A program made the translations under genes and the position numbers. DNA of 64,000 nucleotides. Source: Hyaloraphidium curvatum SAG 235-1. Taxonomy: Eukaryota; Fungi; Monoblepharomycota. The number at the start of each line of letters is the position of its first letter. Position 1 is the stretch's first letter. The notes below the pieces were generated by a model that saw only the letters and a program-made list of their open reading frames with translations, was not told the origin of the DNA and ran no database searches. The stretch spans positions 620,001 to 684,000 of the forward strand of contig JAIVFI010000015.1 of the NCBI GenBank assembly GCA_025558095.1, written 5' to 3'. This document shows positions 4,963 to 40,100 of the stretch, in pieces.

Positions 4963-6652
4963 TCACATCATGGCCGCGCTCACGGCGGCCATCCCAATGC
5001 CCGCCAGCACCGTCTTGGCGATGTTGCCCCAGGGCAGTGACCCGACCGGCACCCTGAATCCGTCCTTCTCCAGCAGCCCGCCCACCGCGTCCTCGAACCT
5101 CGCCGCGAGCGAAGGGTAGAAGCCCGCCGCGAGGGCGGCGCTCTCCCTCCCGACAACGGCGGCCGCCGCGCGCACCTTGAGCCCGCCTTCGGGGATCCGC
5201 GGGGGCAGCGAGCCGAACGCCGCCTCGGCCGCGGCGCTCATCTGCCGCGCCAGGATCAGGTCGTGCGTGCGCTTGGCCGCCGAAAAGGCGTGCAGCGACA
5301 GGGCCAGCACAACGTAGACCGCGGCCACCTTGAGCGAGGCGTCGGGGCGGCCCACGGACCACAGCGGCTTGTGCGCCGCGGCGGAGGCGCCGGGCGTGTT
5401 GATGGCCAGGGGCTCGTTGGTGCCGTGGTTGGGCGTCAGGGGGCGGCGGAAGCCGAACTTGATCTCGTCCGGGGTCTGCGTGCGCACGCGCTCGGCCTCC
5501 TCCTCGGAGCCGAGGAGGCCGCCCGAGGACCAGAAGCCCGACGCGATGGCCTGCTCGACGAGGATGCCGAGCTCCGTGGCCAGGTAGACGCCGAGCATGC
5601 GGTTGATGACGGCCATGCGCTTGCCCGATTCGAGCACGCACATGCTGGCGGCCGCCGCCGCGGCGAAGAAGTAGGCGACGCGGTGGCGGTCCACGGGCTT
5701 GGGAACCACGTTGCACATGAGGAAGCGGTGCACCAGCATATGGATCGATAGGTAGAGTGTCGAGCGGACCGCGGGGCCGACCAGCGTCGTCGAAATCCAG
5801 TTGAGCGACGAGGCGATCGGATCTCCGGCCGCTGCTCGCGACGCGCCCGACGACGGCTTGCGCCGCAGGTACGAAAGAACGAGCGAGGCCGCGGTGCGGA
5901 CCAGGTAGAAGCGCGCGTAGAGGTTGGCGATCCTGACGACGGTCTCCTTCCACTCGTCCTGCTGGGCCTCCACGCAGTTCTTGAGCGGGCTGTGGAGGTC
6001 CGAGCAGTACCGGATGCGCTGGTAGGTGATGGACCCCGTCGGGTAGGTGATGAGGTCCAGGAACCGGCGGTACTTGGGCGTGAAGGTGTACTGTCGGAGT
6101 CGGGCGGGAGCCGTCAGCGAGACCATCCAGACTCCCAGCGACCCGGCAGAGCACTCACAGCGGATGTCGTGTGCATGGTCACGAGCATCAAGGGGCCTGG
6201 ACGGAAACGATCCAGAGTGAGCCGGGGGACGTCAGGGGAGACGCAACAGCGAAACACAGAGGCCGCCCGGATCCCCGGCATTCTGCCTCCGCAGCCCTCC
6301 GCAAGCACGCCTACCCACATAAAATGCCGGCAAACAGCGCCCTGTGCCCGTTCTCGCTCAGCTTGGCCAGCGGCACGAGGTCGAGTGCCACCAGATGCCA
6401 AGCCAGGAACCGCAGCTTCTTTGCGGTGAGCGGGTGGCCGGGGTGGAACGGCGTGTTCGGGTACTTGATCTTCTCCTTCGGCGGCGCGCTGGCCGGGCGC
6501 ACGAGCGGCGGCGGCCGGGGCGCCGGCGCGAGCAGCGGCAGCGGGGCCGGGCCGTCGGGCGGCGGCGGAGTGCCGAGCCTGAGCGTCATCAGCGCGCGCG
6601 ACGCCGGGTCGGCCGGCTGCGGCGCGGTGACGGACGCGTCGCTGGAGGACAT
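4963..6652 (-). CDS. TMEM135/PXMP4-like multi-pass membrane protein, 3 exons
   Basis: ORF 6311-6652 splices via a short exon (CPLMLVTMHTTSA) into ORF 4963-6126 at YTFTPKYRRFL. Pattern AVRSTLYLS…RFLMC…AAAAASMCVLESGKR resembles TMEM135. Confidence 0.55.
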
Positions 6653-17106: not shown

Positions 17107-17417
17107 TTTAGGTTCGTTGGCGCTGGGGGACGTTTTGTGGCGGGGGTCGGGCATCGGTCAGCCAGCGCCGGAACCCGGGAAAGCGGTTTCTCCACCTCGC
17201 CACTTCCCCGTGCGCCGACGGTGGAAGGCCTCCTGCAGGCCATTCGGGCCACTGGATCGACAGGTTCCATGTACGGGACACAGGGCGGCGATCGATGGGA
17301 TCCGGTGCGGCTTCGTGCTGTCGGTTGGACAACGCCTCTGAGCCGCATAACGGGGACGCCGGATACTTTGATTGGTGCGGTACGAGATCGGCCTGCACAC
17401 GCTCACTTTCTAGAAGA

Positions 17418-17860
17418 CTAGCCCTTGGGTGTGCAGGTCTTGTTGTGCTCGGTCCACGCTGCGCGCTGGCATTCGGCTCCGCAGTACCTCGCCATGCCGC
17501 ACCGCCCGCAGCGCATCAGCTTGACTTTGCCGCCCTGGGACTTTCCGCATTGATCGCAGATATTCGCAGACATCGTGACGTTGAGGAAGGTGTCGCGGCG
17601 GACGAGGAAGCCCGGCGGTGCGTCCGCGGGCGCGACGCCGTATCCCGGAACGGCATGATCGCCTCGTAGAGCGAAGTCAGGTAGCGCCAGAGGTCGATGC
17701 AACTGCGCCACACTTCGGCACGCCGTGGTTCGGGCACCGCTTCCAGCAGCATGCGCGCCGCTTCGGCGGCCCGAGCGACGGCTCCCCGGTCGGACGACCA
17801 GGGCAGCAGTTCCCTCGCGCACCGCGGCCGCCAGATCCCCGGCTTCTCCGAGACCAGCAT
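17418..17860 (-). pseudogene. MYND zinc-finger gene, apparently frameshifted or fragmentary
   Basis: Intact MYND CDQC…RCGRCGMARYCGAECQRAAWTEHNKTC at the 3' end. The coding-like upstream part (ORF 17516-17860) is in another frame with no obvious intron near 17640. Confidence 0.6.
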
Positions 17861-17994
17861 GGGCAGGTGGGTGATGTGGACGCTCGTGCGGCGCAGCGCA
17901 TGTTCGGACTCGCCTGTTGGCTTGCATGGTCTCCACCGGTCCCTGCTCAGCCGCGTGCGCCTCTCAAACCATCACTTCGCCGGTCCTGCCCGAA

Positions 17995-20040
17995 ATGCAG
18001 GACATCCGGCGCTTCCTCTCCCCCGCCGGCAAGTGCCGGAGCGCATCGGAAGCCGGCCGTGCCAAGGTGCCGCGCGCCGGGTCCGCGGCGTCGCCGCCCG
18101 GCGCTGCCGTTGCGGGCGACGCTGGCGAGCAAGCACCGCACACGGAGGCTCTGCCGCGGCCCCCGAAGCGCGAAATGATCGTTCTGGACAGCGACGACGA
18201 TGACGCCGTGGCTATTGTCCGGGATGCGCCGCGCGCTTCGCCGGGCATCCCTCCGGCTCCGGCGGCAAATCTCGGCACCCTTATCTCGGACGAAGCAGAA
18301 TCGTCCAAGGATCTTGGATCAGACCCCGGCGTTGCAGCCGATGAGGGTGGAGGCAGGGCCGCCGGAAAAAAAGCGCAGTTTTCGTGCCAATGGGAAGGTT
18401 GCCACAAGGTCTTTGGCACTGCGAATTCCCGCACGCGTCATGCCAAGCAGGAACACAATAAGGAGCGCCCGTTTCGGTGCACGGAATGCGGCGATTTGTT
18501 CCCCAGATCTGAGAACCTCATGTTGCACTGGCGGACCCACACGGGCGAGCGTCCCTATGAGTGCGATTTCGAGGGCTGCGGAAAAAGCTTCACCACGTCT
18601 GGTGGCCTCGTCAAGCACGGGCGCATCCACTCTGGAGAGCGACCACACGTGTGCGATTTTGACGGCTGCGACAAGACATTCGCCGATTTAAGCAATCTTG
18701 TCACGCATAAGCGGAAGCACACTGGAGCGCGCCCCTATCAATGCGAAGCGGAAGGATGTGGGAAGCGCTTCAGACTGTCGGGTAAACTCGTCAACCACAG
18801 GCGGATCCATACAGGGCAACGTCCGTTTGCCTGTGACGTTGGCGGCTGCGGGAAGTCATTTGTTCAGTCAGGACACCTGATTACGCATCTTCGGTCGCAC
18901 ACCGGAGAGAAGCCGTACGAGTGTTACTTTGAGGGCTGCGGAAGAGCGTGTACCACATCTGGGAACCTTGTGGAACACATACGGACCCATACTGGAGAGC
19001 GCCCCCATGTGTGCACTTTTCAGGGCTGCAGCAAAGCATTCGCCAGCTCAGGCACCCTGAAGGTTCACTTGCGCTTTCACGCCAACGAGCGCCGTTTCGA
19101 CTGCCACTTCGAGGGCTGTGTCAAATCGTTCATTACCTCCAGCAACCTTGCCACCCACGTGCGGACCCACACTGGGGAGCGCCCTTACGTATGCCACTTT
19201 GAAGGGTGCGGCAAGGCATTCACTCAATCACGCGATGTCGCCGTGCACATGCGGACCCACACCGGGGAGCGTCCTTACGCATGCCATGTCGAAGATTGTG
19301 GCAAGGCATATGCTCAGTCTGGCGATCTTGGCAGACATCTGAAGAGCCACGAGCCTTGCCCTCACAAAACCCCGTCAATGTCGATGCTGAGGTGCCCGGA
19401 TCCCGAGAATCAAAATCCAGGTCACGGCAAAGCACTGTGCAAAGCGCTTGCAAAGAAGCTTCCCGGTCGCTCCGTGTCGGAGGTGCATGCCGTCGTGAGC
19501 TACTTGTTCGCGACCTTTGGAGACGACTGGATCCACGATCCCGAAGCCGCCGTGGATGCGTGCTATTGGGCGATGACAACTATCCTTGCGCATCCCCAAA
19601 CGACCAAGAATCTGCGCGTCGACGCCCACTTCGTCGACCCCGAAGGCCAGCTCATCATGCTCGAGTTCGACGGCGTCTACTTCCACTCACCCGACCGGAA
19701 GGCGCAGTCGGATGCCAACAAGACCGCGGTCATGGCCACCATGGGGAAGGTGGTCCGCATCCGCGACCTCGGCCTCGACGCCGTCGAGGTCGACGATTCG
19801 CTGGCCGACAACGTCTCGCAGGTCTTCCTCACCCAACCCTTCCGCGGCTTCGCCAACCTCCGCCGCGACGTCCTCCGCGTGCTCGCGACGGATCTGCAGC
19901 TCGGCCCCGGTGAGGTCGACGATGGGACCTGTAGGGCGCTGGGGACGATCGCGGACAGGGTGGTGATCCGTCTCGCGGGCCTGCAGCCGGAGGAGGAAGG
20001 CGCGCGGGACGGGGACATCAGGTCCTTCATGAGCAACTGA
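17995..20040 (+). CDS. 11x C2H2 zinc-finger array fused to a Vsr/DUF559-like PD-(D/E)xK endonuclease domain
   Basis: Eleven C-x2/4-C…H-x3/4-H fingers with TGERP-type linkers (18379-19350). C-terminal SVSE…LRVD…IMLEFDGVYFH…DANKT…KVVRIRD. Intronless. First in-frame ATG at 17995. Confidence 0.88.
   Translation: MQDIRRFLSPAGKCRSASEAGRAKVPRAGSAASPPGAAVAGDAGEQAPHTEALPRPPKREMIVLDSDDDDAVAIVRDAPRASPGIPPAPAANLGTLISDEAESSKDLGSDPGVAADEGGGRAAGKKAQFSCQWEGCHKVFGTANSRTRHAKQEHNKERPFRCTECGDLFPRSENLMLHWRTHTGERPYECDFEGCGKSFTTSGGLVKHGRIHSGERPHVCDFDGCDKTFADLSNLVTHKRKHTGARPYQCEAEGCGKRFRLSGKLVNHRRIHTGQRPFACDVGGCGKSFVQSGHLITHLRSHTGEKPYECYFEGCGRACTTSGNLVEHIRTHTGERPHVCTFQGCSKAFASSGTLKVHLRFHANERRFDCHFEGCVKSFITSSNLATHVRTHTGERPYVCHFEGCGKAFTQSRDVAVHMRTHTGERPYACHVEDCGKAYAQSGDLGRHLKSHEPCPHKTPSMSMLRCPDPENQNPGHGKALCKALAKKLPGRSVSEVHAVVSYLFATFGDDWIHDPEAAVDACYWAMTTILAHPQTTKNLRVDAHFVDPEGQLIMLEFDGVYFHSPDRKAQSDANKTAVMATMGKVVRIRDLGLDAVEVDDSLADNVSQVFLTQPFRGFANLRRDVLRVLATDLQLGPGEVDDGTCRALGTIADRVVIRLAGLQPEEEGARDGDIRSFMSN
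18379..19350 (+). repeat. Coding tandem repeat: C2H2 finger array (~84-90 bp units)
   Basis: Recurrent cggacccacac(t/c/g)gg(g/a/c)gagcg(t/c)cc linkers and (t/c)gagggctgc motifs. Confidence 0.9.
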
Positions 20041-20094
20041 ATCGCGCCGTCATCCCAGTCTAGTCGGAAAAGAACGCCCCAACTCACACGCGCC

Positions 20095-21999
20095 CTACTC
20101 CCCCTCCGCCGTCCAATCGAACCCCGCGAACCGCACCTTGTACCCCTCCACCGCCTCCGCCTCCCTCTCCTCCCCCTCCGCACACCTCTTCCAGTCCGCA
20201 AACGCGGCCGGCAGACCCAGCACCTCCGCCAGGACCGCGCGCGGCAGCGCAAACGGGAACGCGAACGGGCGGGGCGGCAGGCCCTCCTCCGACTCGCGGG
20301 GGGCGGAAGGCACGAGGGTGATCGACTTTCCGCCCAGCGCGAGGCGGATGTACGGCCGCTCCGGGTCCGCGGGTGCCCCGCGCGCGACGCCGGCCCACCT
20401 CGCCTCGTCCTGCGCCCCCGCATCCTCGAGCACCTCCATCCCCGCGCGCGCGCCCTCCCTCCTCGCGACCCCGGCGAGCGCGCCAAAGTCGGCCAGGGAG
20501 AGGGGCACGGGGACCAGCTGCACGCACGCGTGGGCCTGCCGCCGGCCGTCGGTCGGCGGGCCGGCGTGGGCTTCGAACAGCGCCACGGCGTTGCCGTCCG
20601 CGAGCTCCATCTTCCCGACGCCCGCGACGAAGCGGCCCATCTCGTCGAGGACGGAAAGCGCCTCGTCCTTGGCCTCGCCGTCGGGGCCGGCCAAAGAGCG
20701 GAGCAGCTCGGCGACGCTCCCGACGTGGCCCACCGGCACCGCCATCGCGTGTCCCCCCGTGAGGGCGCCCTTGGGCGCGGCGAGGTACGCGTTGCCGCCG
20801 ATCGAGATCAGGAGGTGCGAGGCGAGGGTGGGCGAGGAGAGGCAGAACCAGCATTCCTGGGGCTGCCTCGACCTCGGGGCGCCATGGGAGCGCGGGCCGG
20901 CGTCGGAGCGCGAGGGGCAGTCCTGGATCCTGTGGCCGGGGGTTCCGCAGATCCGGCACACGTAGCCGTCGGGGAGCGGGCGGTCGTGCCCTTGCCCGTG
21001 GTCGGGGGCGTCGCGCGCCGGGCAGAGGCGGATGTAGTGGCCGGGTTCGCCGCAGCGCCGGCAGATGTAGCCCTCGGGGGGCACGTCGGGGTCGCCGCCC
21101 GCGTCGCGGCCGCGGCGGCGCTTGTTCCCCGAGGGGGCGGGGCCGGCCGAGGCGTCGAAGAAGAAGGACGAGGGGGCGTCGGTGTCGTCCCGCGGGCGCT
21201 TGGACGGGCCGCCGGCGGAGGAGGAGAAGGCGAAGGGGTTCGGGGTGGCGTTGGCGGGGCGCTCGCGGAGCTTGGCTGCGGGCATCTTTGATGCGGGCAC
21301 GAGGGCGGCGGCAAAGAACCACCGCTCCTGCTTGCCCTTTGCGCCGTCGGGGGGCACGGGGCCCAGCAGCACGCAGCGCGAGATGGACCCGCCGGGGCCC
21401 GCGAACGGCTCGCGCTCGAAGAAGCGCGGCGAGGGCGCGGCGATGTAGCGTGCGGCGGCGGTGGCGAGCAGCGCGGCGACGGGGTCCCAGCCGTCGGCGG
21501 GGGGCAGAACGAGGGGCGGATCGAGCGCGGCAAAGGCGGGGGAGAGCAGCGACACGGCGTGCGGCGGGGCGGGCAGCAGCAGCAGGTCCATTGGTGCGCC
21601 GGCGCCGCCCAGCTGCGCGGCCAGCGAGCCCGCCTGCAGCGCGTCCGACAGGTAGCCGATCCGCAGCCCGCTCTGCGTGGTGTACAGCCCGCGCGCGCCG
21701 AGGAACAGCAGGTTCGGCGCGACGTCGCCGCCGTCGGCCGGCAGCAGCGGGTGCCCCGCCGGCCCCGCGAGCAGCGTCGGCAGCGGCACTTTGATGTTGC
21801 CGCCCAGCAGATCGGCCAGCTCGGCGCGCTCGGCCGCGGTGCCGTCGCCGTCGGCAAACACCGGGCCGACCGACGCGCACAGCTCGAACGGGCCGTGCTT
21901 CGCCTCGATCGCCGCCACGCGCGACGCAAACGACCGGAAGCGCCCGCGGATGCCGCCGACGAGCAGCACGCGCGCGGCGGGGGCTCCCTCGGCAGCCAT
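20095..21999 (-). CDS. CWF19L1: CWF19-like 1 / Drn1 (lariat debranching-associated) protein
   Basis: N-terminal pseudo-metallophosphoesterase (AKHGPFE…VG, NLLFLG..G, FFEREPF), two CCHC knuckles (YICRRCGEPGHYIRLC, YVCRICGTPGHRIQDC), and CwfJ C-domains (CWFCLSSP…HLLISIG…YLAAPKG…VPVGH; DWKRC…F..FDWT). Confidence 0.9.
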   Translation of the reverse strand: MAAEGAPAARVLLVGGIRGRFRSFASRVAAIEAKHGPFELCASVGPVFADGDGTAAERAELADLLGGNIKVPLPTLLAGPAGHPLLPADGGDVAPNLLFLGARGLYTTQSGLRIGYLSDALQAGSLAAQLGGAGAPMDLLLLPAPPHAVSLLSPAFAALDPPLVLPPADGWDPVAALLATAAARYIAAPSPRFFEREPFAGPGGSISRCVLLGPVPPDGAKGKQERWFFAAALVPASKMPAAKLRERPANATPNPFAFSSSAGGPSKRPRDDTDAPSSFFFDASAGPAPSGNKRRRGRDAGGDPDVPPEGYICRRCGEPGHYIRLCPARDAPDHGQGHDRPLPDGYVCRICGTPGHRIQDCPSRSDAGPRSHGAPRSRQPQECWFCLSSPTLASHLLISIGGNAYLAAPKGALTGGHAMAVPVGHVGSVAELLRSLAGPDGEAKDEALSVLDEMGRFVAGVGKMELADGNAVALFEAHAGPPTDGRRQAHACVQLVPVPLSLADFGALAGVARREGARAGMEVLEDAGAQDEARWAGVARGAPADPERPYIRLALGGKSITLVPSAPRESEEGLPPRPFAFPFALPRAVLAEVLGLPAAFADWKRCAEGEEREAEAVEGYKVRFAGFDWTAEGE

Positions 22000-22586
22000 T
22001 GTCGGGGGGAGGGGGGAGATGGAGGTGGTGTTTTTCTCGGGCGTCTCGGGGCCGAACGCGCGGCAGAGGACGCGAGCCTCGGAGGACGGCCCTGGAAGCG
22101 AGAATGGGTTCGGATGGATTCCACGGTTGGATGATACATACATGCTCTGGATGGTCTTGTACGGTGGCTTTGGTCCGCGGTTTCGCGCTGCCGGCGACAC
22201 GAAGAAAGGATGCCGCGACCGCACCCAGCACCGCGCCAGATCCGGCTCATGGAACCCGGCCGAACGAGAAGTGGGGCAATATGCGATTCGAGCAAGGAGC
22301 GCTTTCCGAAGGATCTGTCTGCAAAAGGCGGAGATCGACGCAGGATCGGGTCGGTATCCCCGGCGACTTGCACCGTCGTGGATCAGGCAATGAGCCCGTC
22401 GGGCCCAAGCGGCACAGAAGCTGCCTCGTCGAAGCCGGGCCGGCGATTTCGGGCCATCCGATTCCACTGGCTTGAAGCGGCGTGACGGACGGCTGGTTAA
22501 GCCCTTGACGCTCCGCAAGTCAGTCAGTCAAGCCGCATCCCGTGCCGGTGCTCTCCGCAGCGGTCCGGGCCCGCCGTGGAGCAGCG

Positions 22587-37127: not shown

Positions 37128-40100
37128 TTAAGAGTCCGCCTGTGCAGCGGGCACATTGACGGAAGGAACCGGTGCCAGAGACAACACTTGGTGCTTGAGC
37201 TCGCCGCCAGCTTTGTGAAACACCTTTGTCAGGAAGGTCAGATCCTTGCGGAATCGCGAATCATCGTAAGTGTCCTGCGACACCGCAGCCTCCTCAATGA
37301 GGGCAGTCAGGGTTGCCTGAGCCTTTTCGTCCGTCGTCGCCAGGCGCTTCGCCATTCCCTCGAGATCCTGACGACTCGCGACCGTCAGCCGTGGCCGCGC
37401 CCCGGTCCGAATCGTGAACGACGCCGCGTCCTTCGTTGCCGCCAATAACCCTCGCGCCGTCCCATGCCCTCCCGAAACCTGCTCCAGCGCGGCAGGAATG
37501 CTGCGAGTCGGCGGCTGGGAGCGAGCCCAGCTATTCGTCGATGCGTCCTTCCCGGTGCGCAGCGTCTCCTTCCAACGAGCCTCCGCCGACCCTGAGGACG
37601 CATCAAGTGCCGCCTGAACAGCCAAGAACAGAAAGTCGGGGCCCGGCATTGGTCTCGCGCTAGGTCCGCCGCTGGACAAGAGCTCGCTCACGTCCTGCCG
37701 AAGGTCCTCGGGCAACTGCGACCTCCAGAACGCTTTGGCGAAAGGTCCGTCCGAGAGACTGACCTCGTCCTTGGGCACCAGCCGCGGACCGAGCACTGCT
37801 AGTGTGCCTTTGGTCTCGTTCTTCACAGCAAGCGGAGTCGGCATCCTCTGCGACACTGGCGTGCTGGTCCTCTCGGGGCTTTGGTCCCGGTGCCGTTTGA
37901 GCTTCTTGGTGACGATCGGGTGGTCCAGCATTGGTCTCGCCGTCTTCTTGGCGATGTTGCGTTTGGCAGCGGGAACATCGTCCGACGACGTCGACGCAGG
38001 GGACTCTTCCGCCGCCGACGGTGCCGGAGAGGCGGCCTGTGCTCCAACCTTCCTTCGCTTGATACGGCTAGGAGCTAGCTCGCTTTCGCTGGTGCTAGCC
38101 AGGTCCGAATCAGATGCGTCGCCCGAAGCCGAAACCGATGCTCCGCGTTCGCGCCCTAGAACAGCCTCTGCCAGCGACGAAGCACGGTTGCAGCGCGGGC
38201 ACTCCTCCGGGTCGTCCAAGTTTGACTGCTTGACGATGGTGTTCGCAAAACGATGCTGCGGATTCCGCTTGCATTGGAACGCAACGAGGAAGTGGAGGCC
38301 CTTGGAAACCTTCGACGGATCCTGGTGCAGTTGCCCTTTGTTCTGCGTGTAGGTCAAGCACCGCTGCCCGAGCTCCGATTTGGGATCCAAGTCCTTGATG
38401 AACATCGCCGCAAGACCCGGGTGCGTCTCCGTCAGAGGAATCCCCCGTTTGCGCTTCGATCCGAGAAGCGGTGAAGGTTGAGGCTTCGAAGCCTTTGATG
38501 TCATAGGCGACCGTGCCTGCGGCGGCGGTGTCGGGGTCGGCGTTGGGGTGACCTCGGCTTTCGCCGCGTCCCTGGCCAGGCGACGCTTCTCCGTCCGACA
38601 AATTGGGCACGCATCAGCGGTCTTGCCCTTCGAGACCCGCTGTGATACCGTCATGGCATACTGGTGGGACGGGTCCGTGGGACACCGGAAAACGACACAC
38701 ATGCTCGATCCAGGACGTAGAGCTCCAGGGTCCGTGAAGATACGGTCGCCATTGCTCGGATGGTAACGCGCCTTGTGCCTGACGTCCGGTAGCATCGAAT
38801 CCGGATCGGTGACCATCTCCGCAGCGATGTCCGGGTACGCTTCAGCGAAAGAAGGAACGTTTTGGCTGCTCTGCGATCCGGGAGGCTCCAGCGATGCCGA
38901 GCGCGCCGATTGCCGGTCGTCGAATCCAGCCTGTGCCTCGGAGTCCCGTTGGCCGTCGACCATTGCCGCCCCGCAAGACTGTTCCGGCGCTGCAGGTTCC
39001 CGGAGAGCGGCGTGCTTCTTTCCTTTCTTGGGCACAGTCTCGGGCGCCTTTAGCGCGACCTCGACCTCGACCTCAGGTGCACGTTGAGTTCGACTCTTGA
39101 CCTTCTTCGCGCGCTTGCTTTCTGGCCGTGGGGCCGGCTCGTCGTCGTCCGACGAAATGACAACCACGTCGTTGCCGGCAGAAGGCTCGGGATTCTCAGC
39201 TTCAGCTTCCTGATTCTCCGTCGGTGCGGCGGCTTCCTCTGCCAATTGCGTAGCGGCGGCCCGTTCGGCCCGACGCGCGGCCCTCGCAGCTTTGCGTTCG
39301 GCTTTCTGTCGGTGCCTCTCTTCCTTCGCGATCCGGCGTTGCTCGATGCTTTCTGGAGTCTCTTCTTCGGCGGCCTCGACAGCGCCATCCTCAGCCTCAG
39401 CCTCTGCCTCGCCTTCGCCGGATCCAGTTGGCAGCTCATCCTGACGCTGTGCTGCTCCGTGGCCGTCGATTTCCATGTCCTGCACCACGTCCGGAGCTTC
39501 AACTTCGACCTCGGCGGCTTCCGTCGTGGGCTGTTTCGGAACTTCGGCGTCGCTGTCGCTCAAGTCGACAACCTCAACGTGCCGGTCCGCAATCTCCGGT
39601 ACTGGAACCCGCCACGTGAGGTCAGGGAACAAGTCGACCTCCTCCGCGTCCTTTGGGACGTCCCTCAGGAGTCGAACCGTCCATTGGTCGAGCACGACGT
39701 CTTCAAGGCCACATGGCGCACTAAAGGACACAAGCGTCAAAACCAGCTCTTGCCAAGAAGGCGAGGGCGGCAAACGTACCCGCACAAAGGAACCAAACAC
39801 TTCCATTCCGGTTCTTTCGAGGTAAGCTTCGTCTTGTTCATCTCCAACCATGACTCCAGGTCAAAGCAATTCGGATGCTTGCACTTTCTCCCAATCACGG
39901 GCATGGCCATCCGGGTTCCAGCCACGGGACAGCGAAGGGAAAGTTTCGCGCTGCTCAAAGCCTCCTCCTCGACATCACCGTCAGCGACGCGCCGAAAAAT
40001 CCTCGCCACGCGCTCCCGTCCGGCTGCCTCCGCGTTTGAGTGCCACGGATGGTGGATGAGAAGTCGGCAGTCCTCCGCCGTCAGCTTGACTGCTGCTTCG

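Follow-up and report, generated by a model that had tools for sequence, protein, structure and literature searches.

We analysed a stretch of 64,000 nucleotides (nt) from the early-diverging fungus Hyaloraphidium curvatum SAG 235-1 (contig JAIVFI010000015.1 of assembly GCA_025558095.1, positions 620,001 to 684,000 of the forward strand), hereafter called the window. At positions 17995-20040 of its plus strand, the listing of open reading frames (ORFs) contains a complete, intron-free coding sequence of 681 codons, with its ATG at 17995 and its stop at 20038-20040. The encoded protein carries eleven C2H2 zinc fingers, a Cys/His knuckle and a C-terminal domain of about 200 amino acids (aa) whose predicted fold is that of the Vsr/DUF559-type PD-(D/E)xK nucleases. 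The analysis below demonstrates this architecture, the fold of the C-terminal domain, the conservation of its active site and the diversity of its paralogs. Catalysis, the DNA substrate, the type of cut, the target and the role we infer, and we consider it probable that the gene product is an active, sequence-directed DNA nuclease.

The reading frame, its finger array and its neighbors

The window has a G+C content of about 65%, and long chance ORFs are common there. Without the requirement for an ATG, the open frame spans 17917-20040 (plus strand) in the ORF listing. This frame is a real gene, far beyond what chance would give. In the public annotation, gene model P0001 likewise lacks an intron and keeps to this frame and its stop, but it starts at Met61 and yields 621 aa. 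We favored Met1 (17995), because the N-terminal peptide is conserved in the paralog on contig 17, with homology beginning exactly at this residue and the paralog's own Met aligned to it, and because no earlier ATG occurs in the contig of the public sequencing run X1, which starts at 17971.

That single contig of 2,438 nt, without joints, corresponds to 17971-20391 (plus strand) and covers the whole 681-codon ORF, and run X1 contains 89% of the sampled words of the nuclease-gene locus. X1 contigs break at gene borders, and the one that matches the neighboring minus-strand gene omits 69 nt (17338-17406), which are bounded by GT..AG when read on that strand. Since contigs end at gene borders and a GT..AG intron is spliced out in the neighbor, we concluded that X1 behaves as RNA. 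The finger array and the C-terminal domain lie on one uninterrupted ORF covered by a single X1 contig, which is consistent with a single transcript.

The eleven C2H2 fingers occupy 18385-19350 (plus strand), as placed by Pfam and by a regular-expression scan, and follow each other at a spacing of about 30 aa with TGERP-type linkers. The units read C-x2-4-C-x12-H-x3-5-H and are joined by TGEKP-like linkers, and both PF00096 and PF13465 scored above their cut-offs: zf-H2C2_2 was matched with E 3e-55 and 181.8 bits (cut-off 40) and zf-C2H2 with E 3e-50 and 166 bits (cut-off 25.2). In finger 7, a Cys replaces the core Phe. When 55 fingers of the family were compared, variability was highest at helix positions -1, 3 and 6 (3.05-3.16 bits) and lowest at the core Phe (0.61 bits) and Leu (0.79 bits). 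This is the pattern expected for arrays evolving new specificities. We dropped a prediction of the target site from the finger residues, because too many contact residues lack a reliable base preference.

At the junction between array and nuclease (19357-19440, plus strand), the family alignment revealed a Cys-His-Cys-Cys knuckle made of C455, H457, C467 and C482. These four residues were kept in every family member for which the junction was available. In prokaryotic relatives, a treble-clef CxxC occupies the equivalent spot, directly before the Ser/Glu helix. The knuckle presumably binds zinc.

The initial annotation of this locus, made from its letters alone, had proposed an intronless 681-codon ORF with eleven fingers, and the ORF listing, Pfam and the regular-expression scan all agreed with it. 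Each motif that it had quoted was found, namely SVSE (aa 493-496), RVDAHF (aa 541-546), MLEFDGVYFHS (aa 555-565), SDANKT (aa 572-577) and KVVRIRD (aa 585-591), and the Cys/His linker that it had placed between array and nuclease corresponds to the conserved C455/H457/C467/C482 knuckle. It had also pointed out that an array and a C-terminal domain on separate mRNAs would speak against its reading; this was not what we observed, as one contig of X1, a run whose RNA label is guessed, spans both.

The gene is tightly packed, about 55 bp away from each of its two neighbors. On one side lies a divergent zf-MYND gene on the minus strand (17418-17936), with its intron (17338-17406) just past the end of its long ORF. 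On the other side lies a convergent CwfJ/CWF19-like gene with two CCHC knuckles (20095-22518, minus strand). The X1 contig that covers the finger-nuclease gene also takes in the last ~300 nt of the latter, and the two transcripts probably overlap at their 3' ends.

Fold and active site of the C-terminal domain

To place the C-terminal domain, we used both the window protein and A1, an alignment of seven family members. In Pfam, MTES_1575 was matched by six of the seven members, DUF559 by three (best E 3.5e-7) and Vsr by one (E 0.05). The relative P0005 scored above the curated cut-off of DUF559 (28.8 versus 20.6 bits). Searching the PDB with the A1 profile returned 3r3p, the catalytic domain of I-Bth0305I, as the best solved structure (E 6.7e-4), and hhalign aligned the family profile with 18 metagenomic relatives containing DUF4379 and DUF559 at 99.1% probability (E 9e-19). 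DUF559 clusters also made up 16 of the 30 language-model neighbors. Membership of the DUF559/MTES_1575/Vsr clan is thus reached at the level of sequence profiles, through relatives and through the family profile. A phmmer search of the C-terminal domain against the PDB gave a chance match only, NCBIfam had no match for the protein and PADLOC had none for the fungal nuclease domains.

AlphaFold run on the single C-terminal sequence reached a predicted local distance difference test score (pLDDT) of only 48, and the model built with A1 was used instead (pLDDT 83, predicted template-modeling score 0.83). It has a helix-strands-helix-strand core, in which aa 544-547, 553-559 and 585-590 form strands and aa 569-581 a helix, and then two helices. 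An exhaustive VIA-align search returned neighbors that were almost all PD-(D/E)xK nucleases, Vsr included (Z 6.0-7.8), with Z-scores of 7.6 for PaqCI, 7.2 for both Cdn1 and Can2, 7.1 for Bax1, 6.0 for NucS and for Vsr (1cw0), and 5.1 for FokI. The nearest folds in the ESM Atlas were DUF4379 clusters, some of them also containing DUF559, at template-modeling scores of 0.50-0.55. The latter matches extended over model residues 1-216 and included a C-terminal subdomain made of one strand and two helices, which, with the disordered linker that follows it, occupies 19768-20007 (plus strand); pLDDT is about 90 up to model residue 210. Collectively, the AlphaFold model, VIA-align and the ESM Atlas point to a restriction-endonuclease-like alpha-beta-beta-beta-alpha-beta core. 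The Z-scores alone would be insufficient, but with the profile matches we regard the predicted fold and the clan of the C-terminal domain as settled: a PD-(D/E)xK fold of the Vsr/DUF559 (EDxHD) type.

The active site was then read from A1 and from the alignment with 3r3p. In I-Bth0305I, residues E170, D196, N208, H213 and D222 are the equivalents of Vsr E25, D51, H64, H69 and D97 (PMC3239194). The crystal construct of 3r3p carries H213A, and the alignment fits it: E557 of the window protein falls on a conserved acidic residue (E206), D559 on N208, H564 on H213 and D573 on D222. D543, in the strand before it, and E496, in the first helix, are outside the 3r3p-aligned stretch and were matched by these positions to D196 and E170, respectively. 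That helix (19465-19491, plus strand) bears an R/H-S-x-x-E-x-H-A motif conserved in all members; its Ser and Glu are invariant in the 18 prokaryotic relatives, and E496 is present in every family member retaining the region. The composite EDxHD catalytic motif is therefore represented by E496, D543, H564 and D573, all present and conserved.

The remainder of the catalytic core (19615-19767, plus strand) comprises D543, E557, D559, G560, H564, D573, K576, R588, R590 and D591. All were invariant in A1, except E557 (six of seven), which is a Phe in the paralog on contig 28. The members are 27-34% identical to each other. A1 has only 14 invariant columns, and the predicted catalytic residues D543, D559, H564 and D573, with K576 next to them, account for five of these. 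For the junction and nuclease domain of the three closest paralogs, the ratio of nonsynonymous to synonymous substitution rates (dN/dS) was 0.13-0.23, with dS > 1.3, values that reflect long-term purifying selection. It is mainly because of this selection that we favor an active enzyme, although it does not amount to proof.

These results upheld two further proposals of the initial annotation. Its Vsr/DUF559-like assignment agrees with the DUF559, MTES_1575 and I-Bth0305I profile matches and with the model, which adopts a Vsr-like PD-(D/E)xK fold rather than failing to resemble a restriction endonuclease, the outcome that had been named as contrary to it. Its putative catalytic residues, described as intact, were recovered as E496, D543, E557, D559, H564 and D573, present and conserved.

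If active, the protein would be a nuclear, sequence-directed DNA endonuclease or nickase. Its array of eleven C2H2 fingers would recognize an extended DNA site, and the Cys/His knuckle would couple the array to the Vsr/EDxHD-type (DUF559 clan) PD-(D/E)xK domain. The Mg2+ used in DNA hydrolysis would be bound by the conserved Asp and Glu residues, and His564 would act as the general base, in line with what has been proposed for Vsr and I-Bth0305I.

Several observations weigh against such an activity. Taken alone, the window protein matched MTES_1575 with E 0.0011 and 19.4 bits, under the Pfam curated cut-off of 38.2. Foldseek of the C-terminal model against the PDB gave no match at E <= 0.001, and every VIA-align Z-score was below 8, a range that the tool rates as middling. 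A FASTKD4 module with a RAP domain was also among the VIA-align neighbors (Z 6.8), and there are other cases in which a PD-(D/E)xK domain has been taken over for a function in RNA metabolism. Many recognition helices have small or hydrophobic residues at contact positions, so that a high specificity for sequence cannot be taken for granted. Three of the six genomic copies described below are disrupted, and upkeep of the family is not uniform. Finally, the RNA label of run X1 is a guess, and its contigs reveal neither strand nor exact ends.

Some of these points suit an ordinary zinc-finger regulator, whose nuclease-fold tail would not cut and would act as a binding or scaffold module for DNA, RNA or protein. 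Exapted PD-(D/E)xK folds do exist, and the FASTKD4 likeness (PMC11879112), the score under the Pfam cut-off, the Phe that replaces E557 in the contig-28 paralog and the protein-docking-like motifs at the termini (see below) all go in the same direction. We nevertheless consider a non-cutting tail to be unlikely. The catalytic equivalents of Vsr and I-Bth0305I were all kept among such divergent members, and the dN/dS values argue for sustained constraint. Vsr itself has a Phe at the position equivalent to E557 (PMC3239194), so that the change in the contig-28 paralog need not inactivate it. Moreover, Pfam RAP (PF08373) had no match at E <= 1 in any of the seven members, and the likeness to the FASTKD4 module is only structural. 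A sequence-directed nuclease stays our preferred reading.

Paralogs, origin and terminal motifs

A search of the 31.9 Mb assembly (55 contigs) found exactly six loci of the nuclease family, five of which carry differing C2H2 arrays. The recurrence of the nuclease with different finger arrays, a check put forward in the initial annotation, was therefore positive. Three copies are intact: the window gene on contig 15, with its 11 C2H2 fingers; P0004 on contig 7 (596 aa), with 10 long-knuckle C2H2 fingers; and P0008 on contig 28 (337 aa; L012 5049-6158, minus strand), which has CxxCGG..CEHG repeats and no C2H2 finger. The other three are broken. The contig-17 copy, with 18 C2H2 fingers, has an in-frame TGA in the first nuclease helix, and the pieces on either side of this stop were analyzed separately. 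The contig-10 copy, with 8 + 7 C2H2 fingers, has a frameshift inside the array, and the contig-8 copy, with 11 C2H2 fingers that include a recent internal triplication, has one inside the nuclease domain.

In the contig-8 array (L011 5952-7562, plus strand), five alternations of the recognition helices TSSSLTT and DSSSLTA show that the array grew via unequal recombination. In P0008, the repeats that precede the nuclease read CxxCGG-x3-CEHG and had no Pfam match at E <= 0.01, and the gene model ends in an acidic tail resembling a SUMO-interaction motif (SIM). A MYND gene related to the one beside the window gene (about 50% aa identity over 98 residues) also adjoins this paralog, in a different orientation. 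Adjacency to MYND genes at two loci is weak evidence and may be due to chance, as the genome contains at least 368 MYND candidates.

When 1.84 billion representative proteins were searched exhaustively with phmmer, only five were returned: the window protein, two of its paralogs and a pair from elsewhere. Word-based protein searches found only the window protein or Hyaloraphidium paralogs. The pair, P0005 and P0006, comes from uncultured eukaryotes and contains the same C2H2-nuclease fusion. P0005, with 8 fingers, is encoded on a eukaryote-like contig of 54% G+C, beside an ion-channel-like gene; no synteny between this contig and the window was found. P0006 has long-knuckle fingers and comes from a metagenome (JGI sample 3300059473). 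The gene after P0006 has a weak precomputed match to N6_N4_Mtase, which hints at a methyltransferase neighbor.

We then considered where the nuclease module came from. Scanning metagenome contigs with a trimmed family alignment yielded 29 relatives. Those inspected have 3-9 DUF4379 treble-clef fingers before the nuclease, with the CxxC knuckle and the Ser..Glu helix positioned as in the fungal proteins, and one relative was matched by the PADLOC model 'HEase'. The same build, DUF4379-like repeats plus an EDxHD/Vsr nuclease, was reported in 2025 for homing endonucleases of phage introns belonging to groups I and II, described as a large unrecognized outgroup of EDxHD/Vsr homing endonucleases (PMC12350094). 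In the 2012 census of PD-(D/E)xK proteins, the Vsr/DUF559 clade was listed as prokaryotic (PMC3424549), and DUF4379 proteins have been reported as acquired and amplified by early-diverging fungi (PMC11291939). The window itself holds, at 37128-39851 (minus strand), a 907-aa ORF with two DUF4379 treble-clef motifs (Pfam, 47 bits versus a cut-off of 24.5); it has SIM-like hydrophobic-plus-acidic motifs and no nuclease domain. The most economical history would be a transfer of the knuckle-plus-nuclease module into the lineage and its subsequent fusion to C2H2 arrays, a direction and a timing that we infer. The module would thus descend from a prokaryotic/phage family aimed by treble-clef zinc-finger repeats, with homing endonucleases among its members, and, once joined to eukaryotic C2H2 arrays in the Hyaloraphidium lineage, it would have given rise to a small birth-and-death family.

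We also considered whether a selfish element that is still mobile carries the gene as its cargo or effector; the gene would then be a free-standing nuclear homing endonuclease gene or a transposon gene, not a host gene. The intron-encoded homing endonucleases among the closest relatives (PMC12350094) and the 'HEase' match are in line with this, as are the six dispersed copies, half of them broken, which would fit an invasion-decay cycle. In addition, the contig-8 copy adjoins a 486-aa ORF with a weak match to Phage_integrase (tyrosine recombinase), which lies on the minus strand at L011 7684-9141 (contig 8, 527683-529140) and ends 13 nt from the frameshifted nuclease copy. This recombinase ORF may be a Crypton-like remnant. 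We found no signs of current mobility in flanks, repeats, recombinase neighbors, GC3 (G+C at third codon positions) or gene setting. DNA similarity between paralogs ends exactly at the ORF borders, with no shared flanks or terminal repeats. The paralogs of the recombinase are distant (~30% identity) and located on contigs 35, 26, 30 and 10, not beside the other nuclease copies. The copies are old, as judged from dS, and the GC3 of the nuclease part (0.82) is near that of the neighboring host gene (0.89). Lastly, the window gene does not have the setting of a homing endonuclease gene, which lies in a self-splicing intron or intein or is free-standing in or beside its own target; it is an ordinary intron-free nuclear gene, closely flanked by the zf-MYND and CwfJ-like genes. 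A currently mobile element therefore appears quite improbable to us. The mix of intact and broken copies would suit a selfish lineage in decay as well as the ordinary birth and death of copies in a gene family. The nuclease that we favor could be a domesticated or formerly selfish site-specific cutter.

Inverted repeats of 73 bp surround the contig-8 copy. We rejected them as element ends, since they are copies of a 14-15-nt minisatellite, and we also rejected them as tRNA genes. The minisatellite, whose unit resembles GGTGTCACCATGAAA, is found at L011 ~5863-5952 and at six other places of contig 8 (502-530 kb), and it is present in both orientations across this 30-kb region.

Short motifs at the ends of the protein offered another view of its role. 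The N-terminal peptide MQDIRRFL (17995-18018, plus strand), for which the contig-17 paralog has MADIRAYF, resembles an aromatic docking motif of the type found in PCNA-interacting peptides (PIP). The C-terminal peptide DGDIRSFMSN (20008-20037, plus strand) is PIP-like, as judged with the pattern [Q/D]-x-x-[I/M/L]-x-x-aromatic-hydrophobic, and the DIR-x-aromatic motif thus occurs at both termini. A C-terminal aromatic motif follows the last helix in all seven members, three of which have the canonical Q-x-x-[IML]-x-x-[YW]-[FL]; in the AlphaFold model, the tail that contains it has a pLDDT below 50. A hydrophobic run followed by DSDDDD (18175-18204, plus strand) matches the general SIM pattern, and P0005 and the paralogs on contigs 10 and 17 have similar motifs. 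On the strength of these patterns, the terminal motifs may bind PCNA, and the SIM-like motif may have a SUMO-type role. The protein might then dock to PCNA-type hubs via its terminal aromatic motifs.

Such docking would also suit a repair enzyme. Vsr is a monomeric nickase, and the window protein might likewise nick at T:G mismatches or lesions, its fingers leading it to particular repeated or methylated sequences and its PCNA-type motifs to replication or repair factories. Homology to Vsr, seen as the one Pfam match in A1 and as the fold similarity to 1cw0, and the conservation of PIP-like aromatic motifs at both termini lend this some credit. However, the sequence is nearer to DUF559/EDxHD than to Vsr proper, the finger arrays of the paralogs are unrelated, which is unexpected for a general repair role, and the motifs were assigned by pattern alone. 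We regard a Vsr-style repair nickase as very improbable.

Returning to a sequence-directed nuclease, a broader version may be put forward, though tentatively and with some doubt. Hyaloraphidium and a few uncultured relatives would use active nucleases with interchangeable C2H2 arrays at long, unique nuclear sites; these enzymes would be tied to replication and repair by their PIP- and SIM-like motifs and would make programmed or selfish breaks at specific sites of a eukaryotic nuclear genome.

Comparison with known systems

We searched full-text literature for a Vsr-like nuclease fused to C2H2 fingers, or for a natural zinc-finger nuclease (ZFN), and found neither; coverage was incomplete and absence is not proven. 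The initial annotation knew of no characterized eukaryotic protein of this architecture. That statement held for the literature that we searched, but the layout has some precedent in the DUF4379-nuclease proteins of prokaryotes and phages. We conclude that the window protein is a new eukaryotic variant of the DUF559/EDxHD-clan nucleases. It is not a homing endonuclease by genomic criteria, it is not a RAP protein, and FokI is only a distant structural neighbor.

By profile and by predicted fold, the closest relatives of the nuclease module are the prokaryotic and phage proteins that combine DUF4379 with DUF559/MTES_1575. As in the window protein, their zinc-module repeats lead directly into a Cys knuckle, behind which come the Ser/Glu helix and the nuclease. 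They differ in that the repeats are treble-clef rather than C2H2 and the hosts are bacteria or phages. No biochemical characterization of these proteins was found in the searched literature.

I-Bth0305I, the EDxHD enzyme of structure 3r3p, shares the Vsr-like core, the E, D, (E), H, D set of residues and a DNA-binding region N-terminal to the nuclease (PMC3239194). Its gene sits in a group I intron of a phage, and it binds DNA through NUMOD/helix-turn-helix modules, whereas the window protein is the product of a nuclear fungal gene, with 11 C2H2 fingers, an Asp at the position of Asn208, an extra C-terminal helical subdomain and the terminal motifs. Vsr resembles the window protein in its fold (1cw0, Z 6.0 over 101 residues) and in the positions of its catalytic Asp, His and Asp, according to the mapping of PMC3239194. 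It has His64 and Phe62 where the window protein has Asp559 and Glu557, it is a stand-alone bacterial mismatch nickase and its Pfam family gave a weak match in one member only.

In yeast HO and the R2-type retrotransposon proteins, both of them nuclear proteins of eukaryotes, zinc fingers contribute to the aiming of a site-specific nuclease. HO is a LAGLIDADG nuclease with C-terminal fingers, and in R2 a reverse transcriptase separates the fingers from the restriction-like endonuclease. In contrast, Pfam detected neither a LAGLIDADG nor a reverse transcriptase domain in the window protein.

Designer ZFNs are C2H2 arrays joined to a restriction-enzyme cleavage domain. The initial annotation had likened the protein to them, and the ORF, Pfam and the fold of the C-terminal domain confirmed the same order of parts, an array followed by a C-terminal restriction-fold nuclease. 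If the protein is active, evolution would have reached the ZFN solution from a homing-endonuclease lineage whose prokaryotic members use other zinc fingers. One nuclease with different arrays would then be a tractable set for learning how long arrays specify cutting sites, and a compact Vsr-type nicking or cleavage module might serve genome engineering with designer DNA-binding arrays. In any case, the Vsr/DUF559 clade, catalogued as prokaryotic (PMC3424549), is hereby extended into fungal nuclear genomes. Engineered ZFNs made with FokI share with the window protein tandem C2H2 fingers with canonical linkers followed by a C-terminal restriction-fold cleavage domain. The window protein differs from them in its natural 11-finger array and in its PD-(D/E)xK family, which is Vsr/DUF559 (VIA-align Z 5.1 with FokI). 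If the broader version given above is true, such proteins would be nature's equivalent of engineered ZFNs, descended from homing endonucleases and at work in the nucleus.

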